A DNA stretch of 63,924 nucleotides, filler included, from Guillardia theta CCMP2712 (GCF_000315625.1; 3 parts of 3 records of this genome joined end to end with filler, not necessarily neighbours in it), one strand, 5' to 3'; shown: positions 19,786-43,615, numbered from the whole stretch's first letter. Translations and numbers: made by a program. Notes: generated by a model not told the origin, from the letters alone.

Positions 19786-19915
19786 TTCATAATATAGCAA
19801 ACGATTAAACACATTCCTGCTCTCGCGTTATGTAGCCTGTTTGAACATGTCAGCAAGAGGGAGAGAGAGGAGAAAGAGAAGAAAGAGGAGGCAGGAAGGT
19901 GAGACGAGAAAAGAG

Positions 19916-19951
<36 letters not shown>

Positions 19952-20809
19952 CTTTCGAAGTCTTGCCAGCAGGACAGGACACGCAGGTGTCATGAGGGAT
20001 CATGGTATAGGCTGAGTAGTCGCAGTTGCAGTTCGTCTCTCGCGCTGAGAGGATGAAGATGGAGGAGGATACGTTGAGCCCTACCCCCGCACCCCAGGGA
20101 TCTTTGCCCTCCTGCTTGCTAGATTCACATGGAAGAAGAGGGAGAAGAGAAGGAGGAGGAGGTAGAGTAGTAGTAGTAGGAGGAGGAGGTAGAGGAGGAG
20201 GAGGAGGNNNNNNNNNNNNNNNNNNNNNNNNNNNNNNNNNNNNNNNNNNNNNNNNNNNNNNNNNNNNNNNNNNNNNNNNNNNNNNNNNNNNNNNNNNNNN
20301 NNNNNNNGAGGAGGAGGAGGAGGAGGAGGAGGAGGAGGAGGAGGAGGAGACGCAGGCGTACCAAGATCGAGCTGCATTTACCGAAACCAGCAGTGAAGAA
20401 GGAGGTCAGCGGCCTACAGAACCATCAACAATACAAAGAGAAGGAGGAGGAGAGGGTCGAGGTTGAGGTTGAGGTTGAGGAGGAGGAGGAGAAGGAGGAG
20501 GACAAGGAGAACGAAGGGCTGGGGAAGAGGAAGAAGAAGACGACAACGAAGGGAGGAAGAGGGCGAGGGCGACCAAGGGGGGGCGGGGGGATGAGGAGAA
20601 GAAGGAGAATAGGGAGAAGGAGAATAGGGAGGAGGAGGAGGAGGATTATCTTACTCATTCGAGGGTCTGCAGACGGTCTGATTGACATATGTCACGTTAG
20701 TGGCGTTAGCGACGGTTGTCAAATTCGTTGAGTTTGACGAGTTGGCGCTGCTGGGGCTGATTTGTCGGACGAGCGTCACATTACAGATGTCCCTGTCAGC
20801 TCAAGTCAA

Positions 20810-20855
<46 letters not shown>

Positions 20856-23800
20856 CGTCCTCGTCCTCGTCCTTCTCCTCGTCCTTCTCCTCGTCCTCAT
20901 CCTTTTCGTCCTTCCTCCTCCCTACTACTACTGCTGCTCCAGCTCCATTTTCTCCTCCTTCTCCTGCTCTCCTGCTCCTGCTCCTCTATCTAGAGTTCAG
21001 CTCACTTGGGAGCGGTGAAGTTCTGGCAGACAATCCATGGGTTCCTTCCCGTTGTCGCATCCGACTGACGTGATGAAGTCAATCCACAAAAACACATATG
21101 CTCCTCCTCCCTCCCTCCTTCCCTCCCCTCCTCCCTCCCCTCCTCGTCCCTCCCTCCCTCGTGCATCCTTCCTCTCTCTTGCTCTGCCTCCTCTTGCTCA
21201 TTCCCTGCTCCTCCTCTCTCTCTTCTCCTCTGCTTCCCCTCCTCCTCCTCCTCCTCTCCCCCTGACCTCGGTGCTGTACAGCTCAAAGTCCACGTGCAGG
21301 GTGTGTCCTGGCTGGCTGGTCGTCCAGTCTTGCGTGAGGATCGAATGGAGCATCCTGCTCGACCAGAGCTTGTTGGTGTAGGCGGACGCCGTGACCTGCC
21401 GTAGTGTCAGACCCCAGCTGAAGTCGAACTCGAGGTAGATCAGCTGACCTTGTAGTAGACGAGGGCGGAAGAGTTGGAGCAGGAAGGACAGTTGCGGCGG
21501 AAGATTGAGTTTCCTGCGTGCGGGCACTTTGAGAGGAGAAGAGGAGAGGAGCAGGTAGAGGGCAGGGGGCGATGGCGAGGAGGATGCGGAGAGCGAGGAG
21601 GAGGATGCGGAGAGCGAGGAGGAGGATGCGAGGAAGGGAAGGGAGAGGGAGAGGGAGAGGGACAGGAAGAGAGAAATCAAAGAGGAAAGAACTGGAGCAG
21701 GAGGGCAGAGGGTAGCATTGTAGCAGAGGATGAAAATTTCACCGGAGAGGATCATCTGACTCCACCAGTCAGCTCCTGCGTCCAGCACATTGCCCTGCCA
21801 CCCCGAGCTGCGGGAGTAGAGAAGCTTCCAGACCGTCGTCTCCTGGCAACCTGCCGCAAACTTCAGCCCGGCTCTTAACAGGCCCCTGTCCAACTTCACC
21901 TTGACACGTCTTCGTTGGCCTCCATTCTGACACCCTAGTGAGGTTCAGGTAGGATCCAGCTGGGCATGCCATGCAGAGGTTCAGAGTTTCGTCCCTGACC
22001 CCCTCAGTCGCCTCGGGGTAGCCCAACGGGGGGCTGACGTGGCAGGTGCCGTCCCCCCGGATGACAAGGGACCAGCTGAAGGCGTTGGCAACCGAGAGGG
22101 CCGGGAAGACTCCAGCTGCAGCGAGGATGCCCGTGGTGTTCGCGCAGAGGAAGGAAGAGCAGGCGAGCAGGTTGTCAAGGGGAGCTGGGATGGTCCCGTA
22201 GGGGCAGGGAACGGCAGCTGGGAGGATGCTGAAGTCACAAGCTCGCTTGCAGATGCCGTACTCGATCCGGGGGGAGAAAGACGAAGGAGCCGTGGTGCAT
22301 CTCTGATCAGCTGGAGAGTAGGTGAGAGTCGTCATGAGCCCAGCTCCGCTGAAGGAGACGTCCCCCTTGCACAGGGAGGGCTGGCAGGAGGAGAGATCTG
22401 GTCAGGGGGTCAGGGGGTCAGAGGGTCAGAGGAGGGGAGGGAGTTTAAGGAAGACCTGCATCTGCAGCGAACGATGCCCCCACCCCGCAGGAGGTGCCCG
22501 GGGAGGAGAGGGAGTAGAAAGAGCAGGAGGAGGAGGACGGGCACTTGCAGGTACTCAGGGGGTCGCACAACCTGCCGCTGCATCCGATGGTGGTGGAGGA
22601 GCAGCAGCCGATGCTGACTCCAGCTATGGAGGTCGACGAGCTGCAAACACCTCCCAGAGCTTGACTGCAGCTGAGGGCAAACGGCTTGCTGTACGGGGAC
22701 GTCCCTTCGTCCTCCACCAGTAGCGCGCTGGTTGAAGACTTGACGTCGAGCCTACCGAGCCGCCAGTAGTCTCCTCCTCCTCTCGAGAGCGACTTTCTCA
22801 CAAGAACTCCGGAGGAGGAGATCACTTGCACCTCCTCTCCTCCGACGAAGGTCTGGCTGGAGGAGAGCAGGGGGGAGTCCTGGTGCTGGACTGCGACTGA
22901 AAGGTTGAAGGAGGTGGGAACGAAGTTGCCAGCTGACTGTTGCATGACGATCCTGATAAGGTCCGGCTTCTGCCCGAGCATCTCCCACGACGTCAGCTCG
23001 TCGTTCTTGTAGATCGCTGCCGCGCTCGAGACGTAGACTGTACCCCCCAGCTGCGCCCGCAGGCGCAAGGACGAGGGGTACATTCCCCAGCTGAGGGCCA
23101 GCACGATCTCGTTCCCAGCTGGGTTCCTGAAGATGGGGATGGACACGTTGACCGTGGTGTCGTAGACCGTTACCCTCTGCTGGGTGAAGTTGTAACCGCT
23201 GGTCTGAACCGAGATGAGGTAGGTTCCGGCAGGGATGGAAAGGGCGAAGGAGGAGGTGGCGGAGAGGTTGGAAGGAGGAAGAGGAGCGTCGGAAGAGGAG
23301 TTGAAGAGGAGCCCACCAGGACAGACCCCATCACAGCACCAGCTCAACAAGACCCTCAAGCTCGACAGCGCAAACTCCCTCGCCGTCTCTGCGTCGTAGA
23401 CTCTGAAGTTGATCCGATAGTTTGGCTGCATGCCCGGGCAGGTGCCGCACCTGTAGTCGGAGGCGAGAGAGGGGCAGCCCCTGCCAGCCTTGAGGAGCCA
23501 GAGGAAGGAGGCGTCGGGGCGGAGGAAGATCGACCTGCTGGGGGCGTTGGGCTCGTTGAGGACGTAGACCAGGTAGTCCTGCTCCTTTCTCTGCATCACC
23601 CCTCCGATGTAGGGGGTGAGCACCCGGGGTAGGTTGGCTAGGAGGGGGTCATCTTGTACCTGCATGAGGGGTACTACGACGCTGAGCTGCTCGTACTGCC
23701 ACCCGGTGCTAGTTGTCAAGTCCTTGCAGTAGGAAGGGCATGCGAGAACGCAGCTGCGCTCGTCCGCGTACGTCTGCGCGGTCGCAGGACACCAGAAGAA

Positions 23801-26371
23801 CTTGGGGAAGGCGATGGCGCCATGGCAGGCGGTGACGTTGGGCCAGAGGACGCGCGGACGAGTGGAGATGGCTCCTGCTGCCATGCCGTCGGCGTACTCG
23901 AGGATGTCAATCCTGCGATCCCCCGATCGGTCGAGGATGCGGAAGAGAACTTCGGTTCCGCTGAGGTTTCCGATGGCGTACGAGGTCGCGTTGCCGACGA
24001 CGCGGGAGAATTCTTGGAAGGAGAGGAAAGAATCGCGGTTGAGGTCGACCTGCGGACTTGTCAGGTAGATAAGGGAGAAAGAAGGTGAAGGAGGTGGAGG
24101 TGGAGCGGGAATCCAAACAACCTCGTAACGAAAGTTCTCTCTGAAGTAAGCTCTTGACTGCTCATAGTTGTCAAGCTTCGTAAAGTTTGCTATCTCTCCT
24201 GCAGAAAGTTGAGACCTTAGCTTTGACGTGTTTGCACTGACCGAACCAAACTGTCAAGTTGGGAACAAGTCGCGTCAAGCACTCAGTGCATTGAGAATCT
24301 TTGCAGGTCAAACATAGGGGGTCGCACCAGTACCTACAGCCGGATGAATGGGCAAGTGAACGAGAGAGTTTGCAGAGAAGCAGAAGTAGAACTGATCAAT
24401 GACAATGATTGCAGATTGAAGAACAAGTACACAACACAAAGAAGCAGGTTGAATCGATGAGGAGATGAAATGATCATAATTGAGATTTTGATAATGTTCC
24501 ACATACGAGAGCAAAAACATCTAAGAAGAAATCAAGGAATGAATGATGATTCATCGCATCTTGTTTTGTTGAGGTGTCAAAACTTTCTGCGACAGGTTTA
24601 GGTTTCACAGTTCTACCAGTAACGATTGCGAATGAAGCTCGAGGCGGTAGCATTTCCCTGACATGATAGGTCAGAGAAAAGCATGAGAAAAGGAAAGAAA
24701 ACACAAGAGAAGGAGAGTGAGGAAAGGATGGGAAACACCGAACAGTGGGAACAAGAAAGAGGAGAGGAGCAATGATATAAATGGGGTGAAAATGAGAAGT
24801 GAAAGCAACAGGGGGAGGAAAATTCAGGGGAAGGAAAGAAGTGAAACAGAAGGAGAACAGATGGAAGGAGGTCAAAGAGAACTCACAAAGTAGGAGGAGT
24901 TGATAAGCGAGAGCCTCTGCTGCCCCGTCGTTGTCATCCACTGACCCGGGCAGGAGAGGAGGGAGCGAGACAGAGCAGACTGGAAGTTGACTGCGACAGG
25001 TAAGCGACGACGAAACACAGGAGATGCTCTTCACCTCTCCTCCTCCTCTCCCTTCCTCCCCCTCCCTGAACCTTTCGCTCTCTTCTCATCCCCTTTCCTT
25101 TCCTCTTCCGCCTCCTCGCCACACCTCTCCCACTCTTCTTCCCTCCTCCTGACCTCGTCCTTTCCTCTCCTTCTCTCTTCAGCTCTTCTTTCCCTTCCCG
25201 CCTACTCAACTCCCCTCCTCCCCTCCCCTCCAGTCTCACCTGGACATGACAGCACAGTCTTATTGCAAGTTTCCTCGTAGATGTCAGCCTGAGCCATCCA
25301 GCACACGTCACGTCCCCCTGACCAGCAGCAGACCCTCCTACCTGCAGTAGCGCGCAAGCGTCTGCCTCGTTCGCCAGCCCCAGCGTGAAGGACAGCAGCA
25401 TCTCGGTGCGCTGCACAACCTTCCAAGGGCATCAGCACGTGCAGACTAGTCAGGAGCAGGACGCACTTTCGACTTCTCGTAGCCTCCCATCGCGTCCACG
25501 TCTGTTGTAGACAACAACGGCCTCTGCTTGCACCAACACACAAGAAAGTCATCACAGCCTTCACCCCAGCCTCTCCTCCTCCCCTCACCACGCTGGTGAC
25601 GTTGGCGTCCTTGCCGTCGTTCCACAGGCTGTTGAAGTTGCTCAGCGTCGAGCAGTGAAACGTCCACGACCAGTCGAACGAGAACTGAAACGTCGACCCA
25701 GCATTCCGATAGCACTTGCTGCGCGAGCCAGTCACGTCCCCCCGACCGTCTTCATGTCCGTTCAGCTCACCTTGAGTCGAGGACCTGCGGCTCGTAGCAG
25801 GAAGAGCATGCCGAGTCGTAGCACATGTTGACTTTATCGCTCGCACAGTCGAACTTGATGTACATGTCTGTGTCAGCGTTGTAGAAGCACGTCCCTGATG
25901 GAGGATCCGAGGTCAGAGGAGGCGGCAACCAGCCATCATGTACCGCTGACAAACAAGAGAGCTTTCGCCGCCTCTCCTTTACAAGCGCTGACCCACGGCC
26001 ACAGCACAAACACCCCGTAGCTCTGCTGGACGTTAGAGATCGCCGTCAAGTCAGCAGCCTCGAGCGAGCAGTCAACGTTGCGGTAAGTCCCTTGAGGGAG
26101 GACCGTTGACGGCACATACTGCAGCTGGGGCAGGCAAGAGGGGTTGGAGCACAGGTCCGCCATTCTGTCCTGTCTGGCCATGAAGACCATCTCGATCGGC
26201 AGCCCGTCGCACTGACTTGAGCTGCTGACCGTCGTCAAGCCGGTAGCGCAACATGCTGAGCTTGTACCTGAAGGTTGACTGCAGCACATAGAGCCCCTGA
26301 GCTTGTCCTGGGCCAAGCGCTAGCAGCAGGAGGCACATGACTGCGAGGCTGAGGGGAGGGAGAGGAGGCAT
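19786..26371 (-). CDS. Large secreted Cys-rich surface protein: signal peptide, Cys-rich exons, EF-hand pair, beta-sandwich region, CxxCPAG (GCC2/GCC3-like) repeats; may be two genes split near 24.5 kb
   Basis: Leader MPPLPPLSLAVMCLLLLALGPGQAQG. EF-hand loops DLNRDSFLSFQE and DRSGDRRIDILE (~24050-23900) run in frame into the 479-aa ORF (IPAGTYLISVQTSGY, IVLALSWG). CMACPAGSY (~21970) and CVSCPAGKT (~19980); many N-x-S/T sequons. Confidence 0.6.
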
Positions 26372-26513
26372 GCGAGGCTGTTGAGGGAGGAGGTAGAGGC
26401 CGATCTCAGTGCATGGGAGGGATCTGTGAGCAACAATCATGAGGGAGCGAGAAAAGTCTTCCATGCCATCTCCCAGCCTCTCACTCTCAACCCCTCGGCC
26501 CTCAATGCCCGTC

Positions 26514-26558
26514 AGTCATGTCAACATGAGAGTGTGAAACTCTCGTGTTGACATGACT
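26514..26558. other. 20-bp inverted repeat (hairpin, 5-nt loop) inside a short direct duplication
   Basis: AGTCATGTCAACATGAGAGT-gtgaa-ACTCTCGTGTTGACATGACT, one mismatch. Confidence 0.8.
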
Positions 26559-27018
26559 CCAACTGCTCTTGCTGTCATCAGCCTTGCGCTCATATCAACA
26601 TGAGAGTTTCATCCTCGAACTGCTCTTGCTGTCATCAACCTTGCGCTCCTAGCTGCCGACTCGTCTTGATCGGACCCAGTCTCTGACTGTACATTCTCTT
26701 TCCTTTGTCCTCCTTGTTTCTCCTTCTCTCCCTGTGCCTCCTCTGCTCTGCTATGCTCTGCTCTGCTCTCCTCTCCTCTGCTCTCCTCTCCTCTGCTCTG
26801 CTCTGCTCTGCTCTGCTCTCCTCTGCTCTCCTCTGCTCTGCTCTGATCTGATCTGCTCTGCTCTGCTCTGCTCTGCTCTCCTCTCGTCTCTTCTCCTTCT
26901 CTCTTCACCCCCCCTCCCCCTGCCGCCATTGAGGTATCACTAACGGCTATTGAGCGGATAAGGCTAGTCAAGTGAGAATGGGAGGGGGAGGAGGTCAGAG
27001 GCGGCAGGAGGGAAGGGA

Positions 27019-27197
27019 GATGCTGGCGTGAAGCTTGTGAAGCGCTTGTAGCATGAAAGACTGGAAGAAGTGTCGATAGGTGGTGAGACGAGCTTGTAGG
27101 ATGGTTGCAGTGCTGATGTGAGTGCGGAGAGAGCGTGTTCACGACGAAGAGATGTCGTTAATGCAAGATAGGATGATCTCGGACTAAGTGAGTAAGG
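27019..27197 (+). repeat. ~180-bp dispersed repeat, copy 1 (probable degenerate 3' exons of the duplicated coiled-coil gene)
   Basis: Closely similar to 32998-33177; the frame KLVKRL(W>TAG)HERLEE is interrupted in this copy. Confidence 0.85.
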
Positions 27198-27660
27198 CAA
27201 GGTTGAGTTTGAAGATTGAAATATGTTAGAGAAAGATGAAGGGACTTTTCATTACGAGCTCCATGTCTGGAATGATGTAGTAGTTGTCAATTCTGAAGAA
27301 TACGATCTCATTGAAAGGTCCTCAGGTCTCGCTATCCAATCAAATCCAAACTGGGCATGTAGATGTGATTTGTGATGAGACATTTGCATACTTGCACACA
27401 CACTCTTTGTTGTACGGGTTGGAAAGATGTGAATGAATAAAAATATGAAACCATGTCATGTCAGTCATCATCATGCTACAAACAGGACAATTGTTGTTAT
27501 TTCATAGAGAAACATTGATGACAAAAGTTACTGTAGCCTTTCAGAACAATCTTACCCTGCTGCTAAATAAAGTCATTTTTCTTGAACCTGCCCATGGCGT
27601 CCGAGAGAAACGTTCGAACATGACGATGTATTGTCCTCAGACTCTGCACAAACATCAGTT

Positions 27661-28150
27661 TTAAGCTGAAGCAAATTGAGTTGAATCGACCTTCCTGATT
27701 GCATTAGAGCCAGAAGCCTGAAACCAGATAGCCTGATGCTGTAAATCCTCACTCGATCGGTCTGCCTCGATGGCTGCGAGCACGGCCTCGATGCCCCCGA
27801 GCCTCACAATCTTGACACTGTTGTCCGCGTTCAGGGCTAGGTTTCTTAGAGCTCCGCACGCCTCCTGCTGCACGGGCTGGCTGGTGGGATGTGCACGCAT
27901 GGCTGCGAGCACGGCATAGAGGTGTTGTCCGCGTTGCAAGCCAGGCTCCGTACTGCTCCGCACGCCTGCTCCTGTACGGGGTGGCTTGAGGAACAAGTCT
28001 GCATGGCTGCGAGCACGGCCTCGATGCCCCCGAGCCCCGCGATCTTGACCTCGTTGTCGTCGTTGACAGCAAGGCTCTGCAGCGCTCTACATGCCTGCTG
28101 CTGTACAGCCTGGCTGGCGGGATGTACACGCATGGCTGCGAGCACGGTCG
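27661..28150 (-). pseudogene. Armadillo (ARM)-repeat gene fragment, frameshifted
   Basis: About three to four 42-aa units (VLAAMRxHPxSxxVQQxACxALxxLAxNxDNxVKIxxLGGIEA). An internal deletion/frameshift lies near 27920 and there is no start. Confidence 0.8.
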
Positions 28151-28317
28151 TTTCATCTCTCCCCTCCCATCAGTTCACCATTCAATACAGTGACCCCGCG
28201 TTGAGCTGAAACTGGCCCGGTCAGAACGTGACTGTGACTCTGTGAGGCTCGGGGCCGCTTGTACTAGTAACTTCAGTCTCCCGGTGGCCCGGACTCCCGG
28301 CGTCCGCCGGAGTCACT

Positions 28318-30376
28318 GAGCAGTCAAGCCTCTGAGGCGGGTTTCCTGAGGCTGTCAGGTTCAACCGTCCGCGATGATGGGAGACGAAGCTACTTGAGGC
28401 AGGAGAGAGAGAGATGAACAGGAGAAGACAGGCAGCAGACAAGACGATGACCATAGGAGAGGAAAGAAAGCATGATAGAGCGCGCACCTGTCTAGATGAT
28501 CTTGTGAGAGCTGAGAGAGGCTGCTAGATGAACGAGTCGAGAGCCGCTCGATATCCGTCAGAGAGAAGAGTAGCGATGAGAGGAAACAACTCCCTCGACC
28601 GGTGAGCTCCTCGCCATCGTCTCATCTGCTGCTCACGTCTCCCAAGCAGCTCCCGCATGTCCTATGACTGTGTGACGGACAAGCGAAGAGCAAAGGCAAG
28701 CTGCCTCTCCAAGGTGACGCCTGCTCGCCCTCTCTTGGTGCTGCTGACGCACAAGCATCGCGAGCAGACGATCTCCGCGGTCCTCGCGACCGAGCAGGAG
28801 TCATGGTGGATGTCGAGGATACGCGAGATGTCGTGCAAGGATCTCAAGAGCATGGTCAGGATCTCAGCGCTAGAGCAACAGGTGACGAGGTCGACGGCTG
28901 TGGCGGAGACGATGCTGATGGGGGTGCTGCAGCTTGTGGGCGAGCAGACCAAGATGAAGATGCTGGAAGAGAAGCTGAGGTGCGACAGGAAGCTGCTTGC
29001 ACGAGCAATGCCGTGTGCTTGCTCTGTCTACAGGGCTGACATGCTGCTGCATGGCAAGAAGCGCTTGCCGGAGCTGACATGGCTGTACAGGTCTGCAGGC
29101 CTGCAGGCAGAGGAGAACAAGTCGTTTGACATGACTCAAGTGCTGAAGATGCAGGAGGAGTGAGTTGGTGGCGGCAGGGGTGATAAGCTTGTGATGGCGA
29201 GGAATGATCAGCCGTCACAAGCAAGAGATGAAGAGGCTGCGAGAAGAGTCGCAAGGCCGCGTCGCTTGTCTCAAGGCGAGTCTGCGCTCCTTGCGCGCTG
29301 TGCGGCGACTTAGCTGGAGGAGGGCGAGAGGGAGGAGATAGGCAGGAGATGAGGAGCAGGTGGAGAAGCAGGAGGAGGAGCAGTGGGTGGATGCTTGTAG
29401 AGCTGGTGACATGCTGGAGCAGAGCAAGCTGAGGGAGGTGAAGGCTTCAAACGAGTCGATGCAGCAGGAGATCGAGCGACTGAAAGGCCTCGAGCTCGAG
29501 GTCGAGCAGCAGACGTCAAGGTGCGATCGATTGCCGTTGCAGCCGTTAGTTCGAGGTTACGGCTGCAACAGAGGCGACGGGCTGGAAGAAGACAAGACAA
29601 GGCTGAATGGGAGGCTGGAGGAGATGGAGAGAGAGATGGAGAGCAGGAGGCAGATAGAAACGCAGCAAGGAGAGCAGATCGCAAGAGCTCTTCACGACCT
29701 CAACGTGACTTGACAAGTACACCGCACACCCCAGCTGACATGAGCGCGTCAGCTCTGCCGTCAGCAGGTCGAGGACCTGAGGAGCTCAAGCTTGTTGCAT
29801 GTGATACCTCATACTGCCTGTCTTGCTGGGCGAGATGCGCGTGTGAAGTTGCGTGTCTGCAAGGAACAAAAGCTGGAGGAAGCGGAAGAAGCGATGAAGG
29901 AGGTCGAACAGAAGCTACAAACATCAGAGAGCATGCGGGTGAGGTGGAGGAGAGGTGAAGGGTGCGGAGGATGAGACGAGGGTGTTGTTGGTGTGCAGGA
30001 GGTCAACGTAGAGGAGCTGGAGAAGGCGCGACAAGACAACCAGGTCTTACAGCAGAAGAATGAGATCTTGAGCAACGTCTTGGAGAGCTTGCAGGAGGAT
30101 ATGCGGGGGCTGCAGGTCTTGTGCGGGAGGAGAGGACATGTTGTTGTGGTAACGAGAGAGCGAAGGTGGAGTATGCGGAGATGAGGGAAGGGAAAGCTGC
30201 TTCAGACGGCAAGATTGTAGAGCTGGTAGAGTGTTGGGATGAAGAAAGGCTGTGGTGATGAGGGAGTGCTGTCAGATAAGACAGTTTGAACAAGAGAAAG
30301 ATGAGTATGCTGAGGCGATGGAAGAGAGACTGAAGGTGACGTGCAAGGAAGCATGAATGATGATTGTATGGATGGA

Positions 30377-30413
<37 letters not shown>

Positions 30414-30425
30414 GTGATGATGATA

Positions 30426-30472
<47 letters not shown>

Positions 30473-31225
30473 AATGTAGATGCAGATTCAGATGACGATG
30501 ATTACGATGATGATAATTCAAATGATGACGACGATGATGGAGATGATGTAGATGATGATGATGACGGAGATTATGATGATGGAGATGATGATGATTACAA
30601 TGCTGACGATGGGAGCAGCAATCTGAAGAGAGAATCTCCCAGACTTTGAAGGAACTACGTCAGGTACATGTCGTGTCGAGACTGATGTGCTCGTGGCCGC
30701 ACTAGCTGAACCACAGACAACAGAGCGAGAAGAAGATGTCTTCTTACACAAAGCACAACTCTCATCTTCGAGGTGAGGAGAGAGAGAGAGAGGTCAGGAG
30801 GATCGCGATGGATGACGACTACCATCACAGATGAGATCTCGTGTTTGACGCGTGCTCTCCATGTGCTGACGACATTGCAGCTCGGTGAGGAGGAGGGGAC
30901 AAGAAACCCTGGGGGAGGCAGGGAGGGAGAGGTAGAAGGAGGGCGAAGGTTTGAAACCTGTCTGCAGATGTGGACGAGCAGATTTCAAAGCTTGAGGGGA
31001 TGATTGTGAAACAGGCAAAGATATTCGACATGAGCGGGGGTGGAGCTTCAAGGCTTGACATTGTGAGCAGGAGGGATGGATAGAGAGCTTGAAGAACGTC
31101 TACGTGAGATCTAGTAGATGTCTTGGTGAGAGCTGATAGGTTGTCTTGCAGTCTTACCATCAGGCGAAATATCAGAACCTCGTCCGTGAATATCACTTGC
31201 TCTTCAACAGAGTCAGTCGTCTCCT
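28318..31225 (+). repeat. Segmental duplication, copy A (~2.9 kb)
   Basis: Near-identical, same orientation, to 40380-43393, including introns and the (GAT)n tract. Confidence 0.95.
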
Positions 31226-33170
31226 GCTCCTCCTCACTTCCACCAGTCCTTCTCCTTCTCGTCCATCCTTCTGCTTTCTCCTTCTTCTCCTCCTCCTCTT
31301 TCCTTTCNNNNNNNNNNNNNNNNNNNNNNNNNNNNNNNNNNNNNNNNNNNNNNNNNNNNNNNNNNNNNNNNNNNNNNNNNNNNNNNNNNNNNNNNNNNNN
31401 NNNNNNNNNNNNNNNNNNNNNNNNNNNNNNNNNNNNNNNNNNNNNNNNNNNNNNNNNNNNNNNNNNNNNNNNNNNNNNNNNNNNNNNNNNNNNNNNNNNN
31501 NNNNNNNNNNNNNNNNNNNNNNNNNNNNNNNNNNNNNNNNNNNNNNNNNNNNNNNNNNNNNNNNNNNNNNNNNNNNNNNNNNNNNNNNNNNNNNNNNNNN
31601 NNNNNNNNNNNNNNNNNNNNNNNNNNNNNNNNNNNNNNNNNNNNNNNNNNNNNNNNNNNNNNNNNNNNNNNNNNNNNNNNNNNNNNNNNNNNNNNNNNNN
31701 NNNNNNNNNNNNNNNNNNNNNNNNNNNNNNNNNNNNNNNNNNNNNNNNNNNNNNNNNNNNNNNNNNNNNNNNNNNNNNNNNNNNNNNNNNNNNNNNNNNN
31801 NNNNNNNNNNNNNNNNNNNNNNNNNNNNNNNNNNNNNNNNNNNNNNNNNNNNNNNNNNNNNNNNNNNNNNNNNNNNNNNNNNNNNNNNNNNNNNNNNNNN
31901 NNNNNNNNNNNNNNNNNNNNNNNNNNNNNNNNNNNNNNNNNNNNNNNNNNNNNNNNNNNNGAGGAGAGAGGGGAGGAGGGAGGGGAGGAGCAAGGAGGAG
32001 GAGGGAAGAGTAAAAGAACCAGAGCAGGAGGAGGAGAGGGTTTCTTTTTGACTTCATTTTATCTTCGCTCATGGTCGTTTGTCAGGAGTCTGCGCTACAA
32101 CGAGCTGCTAGTCGAATCTACACCCTCGAGATGGAGGTGAAGACGAAAAGATGCGAGAGGAACAGAGAAAGAAAAGGAAGAAGGAGGAGGAGGAGCAAAG
32201 ATATGAATACATGAATGATCAGGAAATGAAAGGAGCTGGAAGAGGGAGAAGAGAAGCCTAGAACTAGAGGATCAGCAGGACGAGGAGCAGGAGGATCAAG
32301 AGGAGGAGGAGGAGGAGAAGAGCAGCGGCAGCAGCAGTAGCGGCAGCAGTGGCAGCAGCGGCAGCAGCAGCAGAGGAGGAGGAGGAGAAGAAGCAGCAGC
32401 AGCAGAGGAGGAGAAAGAGCAGCTGCAGCAGCAGCAGCAGCAGCAGCAGAGGAGCAGCAGCAGGAGGCAGGGAGCAGGATTCCCTTCAGCTTGTCTGACC
32501 GCAATCTGACTTGTCATTCAGATTGCTGACCTGCGATCTCAACATTGCAGATGAAATCTTCAAGTCAACAATTTCTGATGCTATAGAGTGTAAATATCCT
32601 GAACAATGCTGCTGCTGCTGCATCATCATCACCATCACTATCTCCATCATCACCATCATCACCATCACTATCTCCATCATCATCTTCATCAACACCATCC
32701 CCATCACCATCATCATCATCATCATCCATCTTCACGTCGCTCCTTGTCGCTGCTTGTTGTCCTTGACACGTGAAGTGACATGACAAGGGTCAATCACATG
32801 CGATGAAGACGCGAGATAGTCGCGAGGATTCGCACTGACCTCCCCATCAGACTGGCAGATAAACACTCATCGTAGAAGACTCGCACAGAGTCCCTCGCCT
32901 CTCCTCTCCTCTCCTCTCCTCTCCTCTCCTCTCCTCTCCTCTCCTCTCCTCTCCTCTCCTCTTGCCCCCTCTCTCCTCTCCTCTCTTCTCCTTCTCTGAT
33001 GCTGGCGTGAAGCTGGTGAAGCGCTTGTGGCATGAAAGGCTGGCAGAAGTGTCGATAGGTCGTGAGATGAGCTTGTAGGATGATTGCAGTGCTGATGTGA
33101 GTGCAGAGAGAGCGTGTTGACGAGGTAGAGATGTCATATGATGCAAGATAGGATGATCTCAGACTGAGTG
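28576..33170 (+). CDS. Many-exon coiled-coil protein of unknown function (copy A; spans a gap)
   Basis: Short exons with GT-AG introns: DLKSMVRISALEQQ, TKMKMLEEKL, SKLREVKASNESMQQEIERLKGLE, EVNVEELEKARQDNQVLQQKNEIL, SYHQAKYQNLVREYHLLFN, ESALQRAASRIYTLEME. Limits approximate. Confidence 0.6.
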
Positions 33171-33177
33171 AGTAAGG
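32998..33177 (+). repeat. ~180-bp dispersed repeat, copy 2
   Basis: Matches 27019-27197; the frame KLVKRLWHERLAE is open; preceded by (CTCTC)n. Confidence 0.85.
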
Positions 33178-33504
33178 TGCTGTTGTGATGCAATACTTGA
33201 TCAATTGATGTACTAGATGTTGTCTGCTACAGAACATAGATGGGTAGTCAGACAGCAACTGAAGGAAACCATTGCAGCACTTCTAGAACATTCAACATCT
33301 CTTGCACAAGACTTTCTCATTACAACATGTAGATAAACAAATCACCTTGCTTTCTTTTTGTGAACCAAAACCAACCAGAAAATCTGAAGCCACTTGCTGC
33401 AAACCCTTGCTCGACAAGAAAGCCTTCATCGTCAACCTCGTCGTCGTTTCAAGCCAGATTCCATAGCGCTTGACACGCCTCCTCCCGTACCGGCGCCTAG
33501 AGGT

Positions 33505-36500
33505 TTAAACGCAGCTCCTAGTGGCTTGCGAGCGGCTCGAAGGGGCTTGAGAAATGGCTCCTCGTTCCTCCAGCAGTCGCCTGACAGGGCTCGAGAGCGT
33601 CTCATCGATGACGGCACCGCGACACATCAGCTCTCTCTCCAACGGCCCGAAGTCAGCTGACAGAAGCCAACGGCCATCCCCAGCTAGAGTCCACGTCATC
33701 ACATGACCTTGAGACAGACAGAACACAGACAGCCTCCTCCCGTCCGGCCCCCACGCAAGCGCATCGACTCCTCCCTCGCCTCCCTCCAGCTCCTCCCGCC
33801 TCCCCGTCTCGACCTCCCACACCCACACCCTATCCCTCGACCTTGACCTTCCGCCCAGCCTCCTCCCGTCCGGCCCCCACGCAAGCGCATCGACTCCTTC
33901 CTCGCCTCCCTGCAGCTCCTCCCGCCTCCCCGTCTCGACCTCCCACACCAACACCCTATCTCCATTGATCGACCTGCCCGCCAGCCTCCTCCTGGTCGGT
34001 ACTGGCACTCCTTCTGCTGACCATTCCACGGGTACCTTCTGCTCCTTTACCCATTCGAGTCTCGTCCTTTCATCCTTCTCCATGTATCGTCCAGTCAAAG
34101 CTATCCTCCCGTCCGCCATGAAGCTTATCTTCCCTATATTCTCTTGCCCCTTATCAAGCTCGAGGCAGCACTTCCCTGTCTCTATATCCCACACCCTCAT
34201 CCTCCCATCCTCTGACCACGACACCAGTCTCTTCCCGTCTGCCCTCCAGCTTAGTATCTTGATCTTGCTCCCATGCGATCCCAGCTCCTTGTCACACTTT
34301 CCTGTCTCCACATCCCATACCTGTATCCTCCCGTCCCTCCTCCCTGTCGCTAGAGCCTTCCCTCCCGGCTCGAAGGCCCCGCAGCTCACATCCTCGCACT
34401 CGATCCTCGTGCTCGCTCGATCCCCGAAGTAAGCCCCGTCCAGCTGAGCTCCCTCCAGCCTCGCCTCCATGAAGTATCCGTGACTCGCGTCCACCCCCGA
34501 CAGGTCAGCCCGCCTCAGGTTGGTGCGGTGGAAGATGCCGTTCCTCAAGATCGCCCCGGGCACTCGCACTCCCTCCAGGTCAAGCCCCGACAGAGCCTCC
34601 CCCGCCGCCACCAGGATCGAAGCCGCGTTCGCTGACGCCCGTCCGGCCTCCTCGCTCCCATCATCTCGCGACGCTCTCACCACCTCCACCAGCTTCTCCC
34701 TGTACTTGTCGCGCTTGCTCCGCACCACCATGGCGTGCTCCTTGATCGACTCGACCTCCTCTTGCAGCCTCACTAGCGTCAGACTCGCCGGTGCCCTCAC
34801 GCGCCCGTCCTCCTGCTCACGCAGCTGCTCGAAGGTTGCCTCCGCCAGGAAGAAGCTCCGCAGCAGGTCGTGCACGAAGCTTACCTCCAGGCTCCCGTCC
34901 TGCTTGTTCTCCTTCACCTGAGTCAGACAGCCTCGCAGCAGCCAGTACCCCAGTTCGCACTTCAACGTCCCTCCTCGCGTGGTCAAGCTGAAGGGCTCGC
35001 TAGACAGGAAGGCGTCTCCTTCCTTCAGGACTACAAGGCTCCTACCTTCCCTGTACATGTGAAGACAGAGCTGTTTAGCTGCATATGAGTACTTCTCCAT
35101 GTAACTCTCGTCGTTGATGCCCGCTTCCTTCGCCCTGGCTTCAAGCTCCGGGCTCTGCTTGAGCTTGGACCACTCGCGCCGGTACCACTCCTTGGCGTAC
35201 TCCTTGTACACGCAGTGCCGGTTGATTGTCCGTCCAGGCTTGGCCCTGCGCTTCTTCTGCAGCCTCGGAAGCACGAGCAGAAGCACCTTGAGCGAGTAGG
35301 GCGTGCTCACGATGCCTTGAAGCTCCGGCATCGACTTCATCGCCTCCTCGTACTTCTCCTTGCTCCAGCCCCCGCCCCTTGTGCTTTTCGCGTGCTGTGC
35401 AATGTACCGGCTCACTCCCTTCTTGTCGCTCAGGCTCATTGGATACACCCAAGCCACCAGCACAGCGTCTCTTGCTTCAAGCCCGCGAGGACAGAATAGC
35501 GAGACTGACTTGCCTTCCTCCTCCAAGTAGCCGCTCCTACACGTGACCACGACCTTGACGTCCCGGCAGCTCACCAGCTCCTCCAGCACCTCCTGCACCA
35601 CGTTCCTCTCCCCTCCCATCTCGTCGTATGAGTCCAGCACCACCATAAACGAGTCGTTCCCGCGTACCCATGCTTGCCATGCCCGCTCGTTGTCGAACTT
35701 CTCTCCTCCTGTATCCTCCAAGTACGCTCTGACGCTCGTGTACTTGGGTAGATGTAGGAACACTGGATATCGCTCCCCCGGCCTCCAGGCCACTCCCGCC
35801 TCGATCGCCCACCTCATCCCCAGTGTCGACTTGCCGGCTCCGGCCTTACCCAGCAGCAGCAGCACCTGCTTGTCCTCCCGCTCCATGAAGCGACTCAGGA
35901 GCTCGTCCGAAGCTTCTCCAGCTGTCGCTCTGATCTCAGGATTGACATCCGAGCAGTTGGTCTCTATGAAGCACTCCATCGCATCCTTCACGCTCTCCTC
36001 CTCCCCCAGCATGCTCTCGATGTCCTTCCATAGACGCCGCGGCAGCAGGCTGCATGCCCCGTGTACCTTAGCGATCTTGCCGGTCGACAGGTCTACCTTG
36101 TCGGCAAAGCCGTAGAGATGGCTGTAGCACCAGGCGTTGATGATCATGTTGGCCTTAGGCGGCAGGTAGGGGGCGCTCTCAGAGGAGACCTGGTGGATGG
36201 AGACGTTCTCAAAGTCTTCCAGGTAGAAGTCAACCGTCTCGTCCCCTGCTGTCTTGAGCTCTCCGCCCTCCCCGCCATGCGTCCCCGTGTTGACGTGGAT
36301 GGACTGACCTAGTCGGGTCATCGCTACCAGCACCTCCTTCACGTCCTCCACGCTCACTTCCTCCTCGCTCTCCCACACGTGCTGACCCGACGGGAGGCTG
36401 AAGACAAAGAACTTGCTGTTCTTGGAGGACTGAAGGACGTAACAACCTGGAGCGGTCTCGACCAGTCCGAGCTCTCGCTTATCCTCATACAGCTTGTACA

Positions 36501-38547
36501 TGCGTCCAGGAAGCAGGTCGTCGGAGTGGGTGACTCTGCCTCGCGTCTGACCTTGTTTGTCTACTTGGCTTCTTCTTTGCTTCACTTCAACAATGGTCCT
36601 CTCTCCCGTCGAGCTCGCGTTTCCTCCCGAGACCTGCTTCGCCACTGCGATGCCTTCCCTGCTGGACCCTACTGCTACATCCTCCTCGGTGTTCATGCTC
36701 CCAGCAGTACTACGGGCCTCAGCCGGGCGCTGCTGGGTTCCTTCGACTTTCTGCTTCTTACACTCCGGCCTCCCCTCGGCCTCCTCCCTCTCACGTCTCA
36801 CTTCTCGATCGCTTCCAAGCAAGAAGTCACCAACGCTCCCCAAGCCGTTCAGATCTCTTCGCTCCATGTCTTCGAAGGCTTTTCTCAGCTCCTCCCTCCA
36901 GTCTTCCTCCGCCTCATTCCACATCATCCCCCGACCTTCATCGTGAACGACCCAGCCAGAGCTGCTGACCCACGTCCTCCAGCCCTCCAGCTCGTTGGTC
37001 GTGCAGTCTTGGGTCTCCCGGCGCTTGTTGTATTCCAGCAGCGAGTAGCACAAGAAGATGTCGCTCAGTCTCGTCATCCTCATCAGCATCACGAAGCTTC
37101 CTACCTCCACTGCCTTGTCCAGCACATAGCAGTAGAACAGCAGCTTCTGCCCGTTTTGAAGGTAGCTCTGCTTCCGGAGATGGCCCTCTATCAAGTCCAT
37201 CGCCTCCTCTGACGACATGGAAGCCTCGTAGCATTTATCTTGCACTCTTCGCTTCCACACGGCTAGAGCATCTCGCAGTTCGTCAGCATCTAAGACGCGG
37301 CAAAGCTCGGTCACGATCGTATAATCCAAGATCGCAATGCAGGTCTTCTCTTTCGGCACTTCCCGGCCAGACTCTTTCCTCCAAGCCTCGAACGAGGGAG
37401 CAAAGATCCTGTCCTCATTGAAGTAGCTCATCACCTCCTCGATAAACTCGCGTCCTACAAGCTCCTCTTCGACAATCGAGTAGAAATTTCCCAGCATCAC
37501 TCGCGAAGCAAACGATACATCTTTGTACCGCAAGAAACACATCAGGATCACTGAGCAGATCCGCCAGCGCGGCAGCTCCTGATTGCTGCTTGAGAGGAAA
37601 TACTTGCATGCTGCTCTCGCTCGATCTCTGAACGCCTCCGTATCTTCACCACAGTACGCGGCCACCAAAACCTCTGCCACTTTTGCCTCCGATCCTACTT
37701 CCGAGTCCACTGACTCTGCTGGCTCCCCATGAACGACTTGCTGTAGACCCTGCGTCACCTGCTTGAGGTCCGCTACAAGCTGACCGTCATCGGCGCCTGA
37801 CTGTTTGTTGTTGTTGACAAGCAGCTTCTTGAAAGCATTGACTCCAGCTGCCTCCCAGGTACGCACGTTGCTGGGGACGCGAGCCAGAAGATGACTTGCG
37901 CGACAGCACGGGCGGGACATGATCTTGAAGTTTGTAAGAAGCGGGTAGTTCATTCCCATCCAGTAGTAGAGGCTCTTGGACATGTCGATCGCCTCGTCGT
38001 CAGGAACTCTCGTCTCATGCCCGATCACAAAGTCCACATGCTTGATCAGCCCCTGCGCTACAATTCCCGACCAGCACAAGTTGAGCACTACCAGCCGCAG
38101 GTACTTGCGCTCCTTCACCAGCTCAGCCAGTGTATCGGTGAGCTCTTGAGGGGTATGATGCTTGCCGCCTATGCAGATCTTACCGTCTTGGTAGCCATGG
38201 CAAGCAAGGTGGAGGACGACTGGCTCTACTCTGCTCAGCTCCCGGGCAAGGTCGGTGATCTTCTTCTTGAAGCAATACTCGAAAACAACATTCTTGGCGA
38301 ACCCTATGAACGCAGCGTCTCCTTGCTCGTGAGCTCCTGCCATGAAGCGGTCTCTGATCAAGTCTCTCTCCTCCTCGACGTTGAGTCCGCATCGCTGCTC
38401 CGCGTCGGCGAAGAACAGCACCTTGAAGGGAGGATCGCCGCTGAATAGAGTATCTGTATCGAGTCGGCTTGGCGGGTCTTCAGCGTCGGAGGTCTTGCAA
38501 CACGCGCAGATACGGTGCAGCTCGACCCTGCTGTCATTCCTCGACAT
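33505..38547 (-). CDS. NLR-like STAND NTPase: CHAT (caspase-like) - helical region - second HG/C protease-like domain - NACHT - pentapeptide repeats - WD40
   Basis: Uninterrupted 1680-aa ORF. CHAT motifs VVLHLACHG and LVVLNLCWS; IHVNTGTHG...IINAWCYS. Walker A LLLLGKAGAGKST (~35824-35862), Walker B MVVLDSYDE, KVVVTCR, TPYSL, SFVHDLLRSFF. Pentapeptides LSGLDLEGVRVPGAILRNG...; about six WD40 repeats. Confidence 0.92.
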   Translation of the reverse strand: MSRNDSRVELHRICACCKTSDAEDPPSRLDTDTLFSGDPPFKVLFFADAEQRCGLNVEEERDLIRDRFMAGAHEQGDAAFIGFAKNVVFEYCFKKKITDLARELSRVEPVVLHLACHGYQDGKICIGGKHHTPQELTDTLAELVKERKYLRLVVLNLCWSGIVAQGLIKHVDFVIGHETRVPDDEAIDMSKSLYYWMGMNYPLLTNFKIMSRPCCRASHLLARVPSNVRTWEAAGVNAFKKLLVNNNKQSGADDGQLVADLKQVTQGLQQVVHGEPAESVDSEVGSEAKVAEVLVAAYCGEDTEAFRDRARAACKYFLSSSNQELPRWRICSVILMCFLRYKDVSFASRVMLGNFYSIVEEELVGREFIEEVMSYFNEDRIFAPSFEAWRKESGREVPKEKTCIAILDYTIVTELCRVLDADELRDALAVWKRRVQDKCYEASMSSEEAMDLIEGHLRKQSYLQNGQKLLFYCYVLDKAVEVGSFVMLMRMTRLSDIFLCYSLLEYNKRRETQDCTTNELEGWRTWVSSSGWVVHDEGRGMMWNEAEEDWREELRKAFEDMERRDLNGLGSVGDFLLGSDREVRREREEAEGRPECKKQKVEGTQQRPAEARSTAGSMNTEEDVAVGSSREGIAVAKQVSGGNASSTGERTIVEVKQRRSQVDKQGQTRGRVTHSDDLLPGRMYKLYEDKRELGLVETAPGCYVLQSSKNSKFFVFSLPSGQHVWESEEEVSVEDVKEVLVAMTRLGQSIHVNTGTHGGEGGELKTAGDETVDFYLEDFENVSIHQVSSESAPYLPPKANMIINAWCYSHLYGFADKVDLSTGKIAKVHGACSLLPRRLWKDIESMLGEEESVKDAMECFIETNCSDVNPEIRATAGEASDELLSRFMEREDKQVLLLLGKAGAGKSTLGMRWAIEAGVAWRPGERYPVFLHLPKYTSVRAYLEDTGGEKFDNERAWQAWVRGNDSFMVVLDSYDEMGGERNVVQEVLEELVSCRDVKVVVTCRSGYLEEEGKSVSLFCPRGLEARDAVLVAWVYPMSLSDKKGVSRYIAQHAKSTRGGGWSKEKYEEAMKSMPELQGIVSTPYSLKVLLLVLPRLQKKRRAKPGRTINRHCVYKEYAKEWYRREWSKLKQSPELEARAKEAGINDESYMEKYSYAAKQLCLHMYREGRSLVVLKEGDAFLSSEPFSLTTRGGTLKCELGYWLLRGCLTQVKENKQDGSLEVSFVHDLLRSFFLAEATFEQLREQEDGRVRAPASLTLVRLQEEVESIKEHAMVVRSKRDKYREKLVEVVRASRDDGSEEAGRASANAASILVAAGEALSGLDLEGVRVPGAILRNGIFHRTNLRRADLSGVDASHGYFMEARLEGAQLDGAYFGDRASTRIECEDVSCGAFEPGGKALATGRRDGRIQVWDVETGKCDKELGSHGSKIKILSWRADGKRLVSWSEDGRMRVWDIETGKCCLELDKGQENIGKISFMADGRIALTGRYMEKDERTRLEWVKEQKVPVEWSAEGVPVPTRRRLAGRSINGDRVLVWEVETGRREELQGGEEGVDALAWGPDGRRLGGRSRSRDRVWVWEVETGRREELEGGEGGVDALAWGPDGRRLSVFCLSQGHVMTWTLAGDGRWLLSADFGPLERELMCRGAVIDETLSSPVRRLLEERGAISQAPSSRSQATRSCV

Positions 38548-38599
38548 ACTAGAGAAGCGAAAGATTAAGGGGAAAGAGTAGGAGGGAGAAGATTAACAT

Positions 38600-38732
38600 A
38601 AGAAGACAACACTAGAGGCAGACAGCGCCAGACAACACTAGAGGCAGAGAGCAAGACAACACTAGAGGCACAGAGCAAGACAAGACTAGAGGCAGAGAGC
38701 AAGACAAGACTAGAGGCAGAGAGCAACACAAG
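38600..38732. repeat. 24-bp minisatellite (AAGACAACACTAGAGGCAGAGAGC) x~5 just upstream of the NLR ORF
   Basis: Visible tandem copies with no spacers. Confidence 0.85.
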
Positions 38733-39098
38733 GCAGGAAGCGGGAGACGAGGAGAGATTCGAAGGGGTAGTTAGCAATACATTGAGGGGGTAGGGGTCAT
38801 TCCGGAGAATGGCATGGTGCGGGCCCGTGGCCCGGCCGATGGCCGCGTCACTGAGAAGTGACTCGGGCAGCTAAGTGACTCCACGCTGCCGCAGTGCCGT
38901 ACGATGAGCTGAGCCGCAGGAGGCTGGTTGTGTGGAAGCCGCNNNNNNNNNNNNNNNNNNNNNNNNNNNNNNNNNNNNNNNNNNNNNNNNNNNNNNNNNN
39001 NNNNNNNNNNNNNNNNNNNNNNNNNNNNNNNNNNNNNNNNNNNNNNNNNNNNNNNNNNNNNNNNNNNNNNNNNNNNNNNNNNNNNNNNNNNNNNNNNN

Positions 39099-39600
39099 CA
39101 AGAGATCAGCCAGGCACAAGACCCCCAATATGGAGCCTGTCTTGATCATGAAGCAAACGAAGCTTGAAGGTGAAAAGCAACAGCTTGCGGCCAGAGAGAA
39201 ACGGCTTCGAGGTGACAAGAGACAGCTTGCGGCCAGAGAGAAACGACTTGGAGTTAGAGAGAGACAGCTTAGAGTTAAAGAGAGACAGCTTCGAGATGAA
39301 GAGGCAAGGCTTCAAGATAAAGAGGCAAAGCTTCGAGAGGAAATGAAGGAAAAGAAGCAGGCAGCCTTTACCTGGACAGAGTCAGAAGCTCGGCTTGACG
39401 GTATGGGGTTTTGCAAGGAGGAGAAATACTTCCGTCTAGATTGCTCTTACTTATGGGGCACAAATGTAAACAGCGGAGAGCATCTTCTTCTCTACTGCCG
39501 AAAAGCATTCCTGGAGCAGTTCCGTTTCCTGCAAGAGCAAGTGCTAGAGCATGGTGCTCTTGGATGGATACAAGGCTCTCCAGGAGCAGGGAAGACGACA
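39099..39600 (+). pseudogene. Truncated Crinkler (CRN/CR)-like effector: heptad coiled-coil header + start of P-loop NTPase
   Basis: Repeats of (QL)xx(K/R)E, then LLLYCRKAFLEQFRFLQEQVLEHGALGWIQGSPGAGKTT. The frame collapses into purine microsatellite right after the Walker A; the 5' end lies in a gap. Confidence 0.65.
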
Positions 39601-39758
39601 GGGGTGGGGAGCAGAGGAGAGGAGAGGAGAAGGAGCAGGGAGAGGAAGGGGGGGGGGGGAGAGAAGTAGGAAGCTGCTCGCCTAAGAATGTATGTGATGT
39701 GATGAAAATCTCATCGATGTCGCGGGGAATGACCTGCAAACCTTTAGAGAAACGCTTG

Positions 39759-39789
<31 letters not shown>

Positions 39790-40379
39790 GTCCTAGCTCC
39801 CCTCCTACTCCCGCGCTCCTGCTCCTGCTATCCTCCTGCTCCCCTGCTCTTGTCCTCTCCTACCTCTGCTCCAGCTCTCCTCCTACTTGAACTTCCGCCT
39901 TCCTCACCTCAATCTTCACGATGTGATGATCCGCGTGCCATTTCACCATCCACGTGAAGACTGGAGCTGCTGTTAGCGAGAGAACGGAACGAGACGAAAG
40001 CAGGAAGACAGCAACAAGAGCGATGTGACATGCAAGTTGATACATGACATGTTCAAGAATGCATGTGGGTACGTAACATATTCGGAACATGCATTCTCAC
40101 ACAACATCTTAAACATTGATCTATCAGATGTTGATAGCTCGAAATTCTCACATTCTTTCACAAGCATCATCGTGAACAGAACATTTCTCACCTATTGAAA
40201 TCCCTCCTCCCAACAGAATCCACCATTTACTCATCAGCAAACTTGCCCCTAAGATCTTGAAATCCATATTGAGCAAGTTGATTATTGAAATGCTGTGACA
40301 AATCTCCGTCATCGAAACTTCCTTGCTTTTCACCTCCACTTTCCCCCCTCAAGCGACGGCAGGCAAGACAAGCAGGGGG

Positions 40380-43393
<3,014 letters not shown>

Positions 43394-43615
43394 CCATCCT
43401 CCTCCTTCTCCATCCTCCTGCATCCTCCTCCTTCTCCTCCTCCTTCTCCTCCTCCTTTCACCTCCTTCTCTCCTCCACTACTGCATACGACCTTTAAGTT
43501 TTCTATCGAGGGGAGNNNNNNNNNNNNNNNNNNNNNNNNNNNNNNNNNNNNNNNNNNNNTTAATTAATTAANNNNNNNNNNNNNNNNNNNNNNNNNNNNN
43601 NNNNNNNNNNNNNNN

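Follow-up and report, generated by a model that had tools for sequence, protein, structure and literature searches.

The window analysed here is a 63,924-nucleotide (nt) stretch, filler included, from the cryptophyte Guillardia theta CCMP2712 (GCF_000315625.1); it consists of three parts of three records of this genome, joined end to end with filler and not necessarily neighbours in it, and positions are counted from its first letter. An uninterrupted open reading frame (ORF) of 1680 amino acids (aa), with no stop and no obvious intron, runs along its minus strand at 33505-38547, on contig C118 of a genome of 87 Mb in 669 contigs. The named protein nearest to its product is a paralogue, a hypothetical protein of G. 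theta CCMP2712. The features that define an NLR-like STAND protein are all present in the product, namely a NACHT domain scoring over the Pfam cut-off, a Walker A motif within it (GKAGAGKST, aa 900-908) and C-terminal repeats behind it (Table 1). Our subject is the segment ahead of the NACHT domain, at 36105-36420, which corresponds to aa 710-814 of the ORF; the plus-strand translation of this segment is full of stops, and its motifs are read on the minus strand. An earlier reading of the sequence alone (the original prediction) had placed here, directly before the NACHT domain, an unnamed protease-like domain of the clan-CD type, the second of two such proteases in tandem. The position directly before the Pfam-defined NACHT domain holds; the other parts of that proposal are taken up below.

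Identity and fold of the domain ahead of NACHT

The motifs from which the domain had been recognised are present as described, with IHVNTGTHGG at aa 750-759 (36271-36300), FYLED at aa 774-778 (36214-36228) and MIINAWCYS at aa 801-809 (36121-36147). The module matches 14 places in the genome, and an alignment of the 11 intact Guillardia copies (A1; module numbering is protein position minus 669) has H81, N83, T84, H87, G88, E107, D108, H115, N130, N134, W136, C137 and S139 invariant. When the A1 profile was searched against 1.84 billion representative proteins, 168 proteins were retrieved at E ≤0.001 and 81 at E ≤1e-10, with a shared core at profile positions ~40-150. The His and Cys to which the original prediction had pointed are indeed conserved among the 121 core-covering homologues (His757 in 94%, Cys807 in 96%), as are Asp778 (83%), Asn753 (94%), Gly755 (95%), Gly758 (95%), Trp806 (88%) and Ser809 (93%); His785, on the strand between the His and the Cys, is kept in 69%. 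A profile of 114 homologues, from which the window copy and its closest relatives, the eight top-ranked hits P0001-P0008, had been left out, scored the window module at 132 bits, compared with at most 4.9 bits in 500 shuffles. Given the genomic matches, the invariant residues of the 11 copies and the retention of His, Asp and Cys across the homologues, the module is, by sequence comparison, a real and conserved domain beyond chance, and its conservation pattern makes it probably a catalytic one.

The domain already has a name. On the profile evidence given below, 36088-36540 (aa 670-820) is a divergent member of the Tox-HDC family, Pfam PF15656, which Zhang, de Souza, Anantharaman, Iyer and Aravind defined in 2012 (Biol Direct 7:18; PMC3482391). 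Standing for "Toxin with a H, D/N and C signature", Tox-HDC was first described at the C-terminal end of an RHS/YD-type toxin from APSE, a phage of Hamiltonella, and reported in Coxiella, Xenorhabdus and Photorhabdus (PMC3482391). Its motifs are [SGxH], a D or N and an absolutely conserved C, its predicted fold is a Rossmannoid sandwich "similar to" caspases and flavodoxins, and its predicted activity is that of a thiol peptidase or transglutaminase (PMC3482391). All three motifs are present in the window protein as T754-G-T-H757-G, D778 (FYLED) and C807 (AWCYS), in the same order of [S/T]GxH, D and C, and equivalents of D778 and C807 are kept in all 11 Guillardia copies. Five of these 11 match PF15656, each over profile positions 2-114 of 130: paralogue L002 reaches 22.8 bits, over the gathering cut-off of 21, and the four other paralogues 14.7-17.6 bits. 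A wider alignment of 65 relatives (A2) contains 18 that match PF15656 at E ≤0.01, the best at E 9.5e-9, and no second family turns up repeatedly among them. One relative found with the Guillardia profile, P0049, scores 29.3 bits on PF15656, and strong PF15656 matches are recorded for P0052, P0046 and P0031 in precomputed annotation. Relatives stand both at RHS/YD toxin tips and in NLR-like proteins, the two settings in which the original prediction had suggested that homologues be sought.

Several results weigh against this assignment. The window module alone (aa 670-890) has no Pfam or NCBIfam match, even at E 10; because the window copy scores nothing by itself, its membership rests on paralogues and profiles, that is, on transitive evidence. 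Searching the genome in six frames with PF15656 gave no match, but it gave none in the control genomes either and is therefore uninformative. Sequence searches of the PDB with the A1 and A2 profiles returned chance-level rows and detected no solved structure of a member, and literature searches gave no published assay for any Tox-HDC member. The structural model, described next, puts Asp778 where a short helix ends, ahead of the middle strand, and not at the strand end predicted in 2012. Within the searchable literature only Zhang et al. 2012 (PMC3482391) names Tox-HDC, and the APSE toxin tip, sought by tblastn in phage genomes, gave a chance match only.

An AlphaFold model from A1 alone had a predicted local distance difference test score (pLDDT) of 75, and an AlphaFold2 model of aa 670-830 from the 65-sequence A2 reached a pLDDT of 91.3 and a predicted template modelling score of 0.87, with an alpha/beta topology. 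In module numbering, two beta-hairpins (residues 26-36 and 44-58) are followed by a helix (64-76), the strand IHVNT (81-85) leading into G-T-H-G, a small hairpin plus a short helix that span D-F-Y-L-E-D, and the strands VSIHQ (113-117) and MIIN (132-135), the latter leading into W-C and then short helices (140-148). Cys807 lies three residues past strand 132-135 and before helix 140-143, and the His and the Cys each follow a strand, with one extra strand between them. The modelled fold class is a small Rossmann-like alpha/beta domain, which agrees with the 2012 prediction in general class but not in the position of Asp778. Because a conserved Asp and an extra strand lie between the His and the Cys, the module looks like a triad and not a caspase dyad. 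The order His, Asp/Glu, Cys is also that of clan CE (Ulp1, adenain, YopJ); this clan was considered and dropped, as none of the fold searches brought up a structure of this kind.

Table 1. Features of the 1680-aa ORF, with positions in the window
Feature	Position	Strand	Basis or content
Whole ORF	33505..38547	-	1680 aa: CHAT-like domain, helical region, Tox-HDC, NACHT, pentapeptide repeats, WD40 repeats
Divergent CHAT (caspase-like) domain, aa ~40-235	37843..38430	-	Pfam score below cut-off, and paralogues
Region called helical by eye, aa ~260-636; part of the CHAT-family gene, not of the NLR family	36640..37770	-	Collinear with stand-alone paralogues
Fusion junction, aa ~630-650	36598..36660	-	Alignments to CHAT-family and NLR paralogues
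Extended Tox-HDC module, aa 670-820	36088..36540	-	Paralogue alignment, profiles, model
Pfam-equivalent Tox-HDC core, aa 721-820	36088..36387	-	Preceded by the N-terminal beta-hairpin extension, aa 670-720
His757 codon, motif 1 (N-T-G-T-H-G, [S/T]GxH signature)	36277..36279	-	Conservation
Asp778 codon, motif 2 (F-x-x-E-D)	36214..36216	-	Conservation
Cys807 codon, motif 3 (A-W-C-x-S), shortly before a short helix	36127..36129	-	Conservation and model
Linker ahead of NACHT, aa 821-894	35866..36087	-	Conserved only among cryptophyte paralogues; low model confidence
NACHT NTPase, aa 895-1014	35506..35865	-	Pfam PF05729, 28.7 bits (cut-off 26.7)
Pentapeptide repeats, aa 1339-1374	34426..34533	-	Pfam
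WD40 repeats, aa 1383-1612	33712..34401	-	Pfam; last blades near-identical tandem copies

The NLR-like family in Guillardia and its relatives

Guillardia theta has at least 11 intact, intron-free copies of this Tox-HDC NLR-like gene. The ten paralogues other than the window gene (L015-L024) are uninterrupted open frames of 794-2015 aa, each with its Tox-HDC motif 110-240 aa into the frame and its Walker A motif ~155-165 residues further on. Five paralogues were scanned with Pfam; four carry WD40 repeats, two of these with pentapeptide repeats as well at the cut-off used, and the fifth and shortest shows a weak NACHT (21.0 bits) and Tox-HDC instead. A second cryptophyte has the family too, since the EukProt entry for Hanusia phi includes a homologue with 53% identity over aa 693-1541.

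Outside the cryptophytes, 120 core-covering proteins were found, with Tox-HDC N-terminal in 44, C-terminal in four and short or stand-alone in 59; many of the short, possibly stand-alone proteins come from short contigs. The named relatives belong to Chlamydiota (Simkaniaceae) and to metagenome-assembled genomes of Anaerolineae, and a related-locus search with A1 gave two Chlamydiota loci. Among the architectures are Tox-HDC-NACHT-HEAT (P0043), Tox-HDC-NACHT-ankyrin, whose gene adjoins an IS66 transposase gene, and Tox-HDC-NB-ARC-TPR, whose gene adjoins those of Fic and HTH proteins and of a group II intron maturase; on the contigs of P0046, P0031 and P0052/P0069 the neighbours are bacterial. 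As judged from these domain orders, Tox-HDC holds the N-terminal effector position in cryptophyte NLR-like and bacterial STAND proteins alike. The PADLOC defence models gave no match to Tox-HDC proteins as such, and their matches in bacterial relatives were confined to the repeat regions.

The nuclear genome of Guillardia is intron-rich. That the copies are nevertheless intron-free, and that the nearest relatives outside the cryptophytes are bacterial, hints that the Tox-HDC-NLR family was acquired from bacteria.

Exchange of N-terminal effectors is a familiar property of NLR and STAND proteins, which include animal NLRs, Apaf-1, the fungal NACHT-WD40 proteins (HET-E), and bacterial Avs and bNACHT. 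With these the window protein shares the effector-NACHT-WD40 layout, a large lineage-specific paralogue family and near-identical tandem WD40 blades, and it differs from them in the pentapeptide segment between NACHT and WD40. We know of no list of NLR effector domains that includes Tox-HDC, and neither its use as an NLR effector nor its fusion to CHAT was found in the searchable literature. Whereas the Tox-HDC domains described so far stand at the C-terminal ends of secreted polymorphic (RHS/YD) toxins in proteobacteria and phage APSE, that of the window protein is intracellular, N-terminal, fused to a NACHT NTPase and eukaryotic, and a beta-hairpin extension (aa 670-720) is added at its N terminus. 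This is not a new kind of system; its domain family, the layout of NLRs and the swapping of effectors were known already.

Three further observations concern these proteins and their relatives. In the last WD40 blades of the window protein (aa ~1533-1610, window ~33720-33950), the translation contains VWEVETGRREELxGGExGVDALAWGPDGRRL twice, a pattern similar to that of fungal NACHT-WD proteins, whose WD40 repeats are hypervariable or recently homogenised. On contig JAJFMJ010000020.1 of GCA_021772275.1 (6001-14107), a gene for a U-box protein, the U-box being a eukaryote-like E3 ligase, lies between two Tox-HDC-STAND-LRR genes of 1095 and 1179 aa; this locus resembles an effector or conflict island, and the bacterium may be a host-associated one. 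On two metagenome contigs (L026, 283-2376; L027, 711-2804), a 697-aa protein combines a Porphyromonas-type peptidyl-arginine deiminase (PAD_porph) with a C-terminal Tox-HDC at 29.3 bits, two modules of protein-modifying type thus being joined in a single polypeptide.

The CHAT part and its fusion

The CHAT domain at the N terminus of the window protein scores 15.9 bits on PF12770 (E 0.009), under the cut-off of 24; a paralogue with 47% identity, on contig C4, exceeds it at 27.9 bits. The CHAT region has 22 genomic matches. Its candidate dyad is His117 (LHLACHG, 38197-38199) and Cys158 (LNLCWSG, 38074-38076); the His is invariant among the CHAT paralogues and the Cys is kept in nine of ten. No Pfam family was found for aa ~260-636, which are collinear with stand-alone paralogues of 657- and 701-aa open frames. 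With ~450 residues of apparently helical sequence between CHAT and Tox-HDC, the two domains are not strictly in the tandem that had been proposed.

A stand-alone CHAT copy with an open frame of 657 aa lies 22 kb away on C118. Its DNA is 92% identical to the window gene from position -185 relative to the ATG to ~codon 636, it ends at a stop 13 codons past the end of this similarity, and its protein is 87% identical to window aa 1-642. A second stand-alone copy, on contig C86, is 59% identical over aa 9-617. The CHAT-family paralogue ceases to resemble the window protein at ~aa 632, and the NLR paralogues resemble it from aa 634 onwards; L016, one of the NLR paralogues, aligns from its Met4, opposite Val635 of the window protein (GTG, 36643-36645). 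At the DNA level, as these alignments indicate, the window gene is a nearly complete CHAT-family gene joined in frame, at aa ~633, to a nearly complete Tox-HDC-NLR gene. Because a stand-alone copy 92% identical to the CHAT part persists 22 kb away, the degree of divergence marks this in-frame fusion as recent. The suggestion in the original prediction that CHAT was fused later, to a protein with Tox-HDC as its original effector, fits the paralogue evidence on both sides of the junction.

Contig C118 also carries a cluster of CHAT paralogues (L033-L038 and L040), at ~127100-127768, 137093-137758, 139448-140227, 150204-150863 and 167465-168121. Two C118 paralogues that were scanned are CHAT-armadillo open frames without an NTPase, one of 1249 aa and one, truncated, of at least 1299 aa.

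Proposed function and alternatives

We suggest that the module is, in all likelihood, a divergent Tox-HDC domain that forms the N-terminal effector of a Guillardia theta NLR-like STAND protein, to which an upstream CHAT-family gene has recently been fused. As Tox-HDC occupies the place of the output domain in NLR-like proteins, we infer that it would be the executing enzyme. By analogy with other NLRs and with bacterial Avs and bNACHT, the repeats would sense a ligand and the NACHT domain would then oligomerise; the Tox-HDC domains clustered in this way would be switched on and would modify or cleave cell proteins, in an immune or cell-death role.

Since 2012, Tox-HDC has been a purely computational prediction, even though it occurs in toxins of insect and intracellular pathogens. 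A role in NLR/STAND proteins gives it a second, independent context, which also argues for a cell-killing or protein-modifying activity, and adds an effector type to the list of those known from NLR-like immune sensors. The many intact Guillardia paralogues, among which one has a CHAT protease in addition, are natural test material for this activity, and the fusion offers a clean example of how the effector ends of NLRs are rebuilt through the joining of neighbouring genes.

The strongest competitor of this proposal, possible although clearly less likely, is that the module is a cysteine-dependent enzyme other than a protease, such as a transglutaminase, deamidase or acyltransferase acting on a host or cellular target. 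The choice between thiol peptidase and transglutaminase was left open in the original description of the family (Zhang et al. 2012; PMC3482391), the bacterial fusion of Tox-HDC to a peptidyl-arginine deiminase-type domain is a protein-modifying context, and the fold searches gave weak structural likeness to non-protease Rossmann-like enzymes and to Cys phosphatases. All of these structural matches are generic, however, no particular chemistry receives positive support, and the C-x5-R loop of the phosphatases is absent from the sequence.

It is a good deal less probable that CHAT and Tox-HDC do not form one protein, the ORF being either an assembly chimera of paralogous loci or two adjacent genes with separate transcripts. 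None of the ten other Tox-HDC paralogues has a CHAT domain, the close CHAT paralogues examined lack an NLR part, the junction falls exactly at gene ends, several CHAT-family paralogues share contig C118, and Met618 and Met683 are present in frame. Two further points count against a single protein, an assembly gap (N run) that lies 396 nt upstream of the ATG and a protein word search that returned no annotated protein of this locus within the range of 924-2940 aa. Yet the frame is open across the junction, through 1680 codons without a stop, and the gene itself contains no N run. At 8% divergence from its closest copy, the CHAT part is not a collapsed duplicate, and the codon opposite the start Met of the paralogue is GTG. 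On the proposal preferred here, the fused ORF would be translated as one polypeptide.

Marginally less likely again is that the module is a true His-Cys dyad protease of clan CD, with the caspase-hemoglobinase fold, so that the protein would carry two homologous caspase-like proteases. As in CHAT and caspase-like proteins (clan CD, PF12770), His-Gly comes before Cys and each stands at the C-terminal end of a strand, which is the clan-CD order; the Rossmannoid sandwich predicted in 2012 was called 'similar to' that of caspases (PMC3482391); and the sole local hhalign match between the Tox-HDC and CHAT profiles superposes both His-Gly strands. On the other side, hhalign relates the Tox-HDC profile to the CHAT profile of Guillardia with a probability of 0.9%, and no clan-CD Pfam family matches any of the 65 aligned members. 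Compared with CHAT and caspases, the Tox-HDC module is smaller, has a conserved Asp between the His and the Cys and shows no significant profile or structural similarity. With either the A1 or the A2 model, Foldseek gave no match below E 0.03 in the PDB, and the top 50 matches of the Foldseek PDB, VIA-wide and VIA second-look searches contained no caspase, gingipain, legumain, CPD or CHAT, an absence that is not proof of another fold. Foldseek against the BFVD viral models returned nothing, and the ESM Atlas returned only unnamed clusters with a recognition value under the usual level. Clan-CD membership is accordingly not demonstrable from the model or the profiles. What survives of the clan-CD-like protease first proposed is a predicted thiol enzyme with His-Gly and Cys each after a strand; membership of the fold found no backing in Foldseek, VIA-align or hhalign.

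An elaboration of the effector proposal, which we consider improbable as a whole, would have a bacterial Tox-HDC, possibly one of intracellular bacteria of the Chlamydiota type, taken up as the cell-death effector of a cryptophyte-specific, intron-free NLR and supplemented by the fused CHAT, the two enzymes acting in sequence with one processing or releasing the other after NACHT oligomerisation, much like the intramolecular cascade raised in the original prediction. The least probable reading makes the module a non-catalytic adaptor or oligomerisation domain whose His, Asp and Cys serve a structural purpose such as metal binding: Tox-HDC has never been shown to be active, and the conserved His751, Asn753, His785, Trp806 and Ser809 could form a binding site, but Tox-HDC is the C-terminal toxic tip of polymorphic toxins and also occurs as short, possibly stand-alone proteins, and its conservation is concentrated in the H, D and C at strand ends, as is typical of active sites.

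The surroundings of the gene offer no functional context, with few long ORFs in 19254-33500 and 38550-43515. Five flanking ORFs tested in these intervals gave no Pfam family except a sub-threshold PEGA at 22445-23884. Assembly gaps (N runs) lie at 38943-39098, which is the one upstream of the ATG, and at 31308-31960 and 20208-20307, and the apparent ORFs at 30825-32072 cross the second of these and are no evidence of a real gene. About 700 nt downstream of the gene, an 87-nt stretch (32742-32828) is 98.9% identical to C118:143160-143246, near a CHAT paralogue, and is probably a dispersed repeat or the remnant of a segmental duplication.

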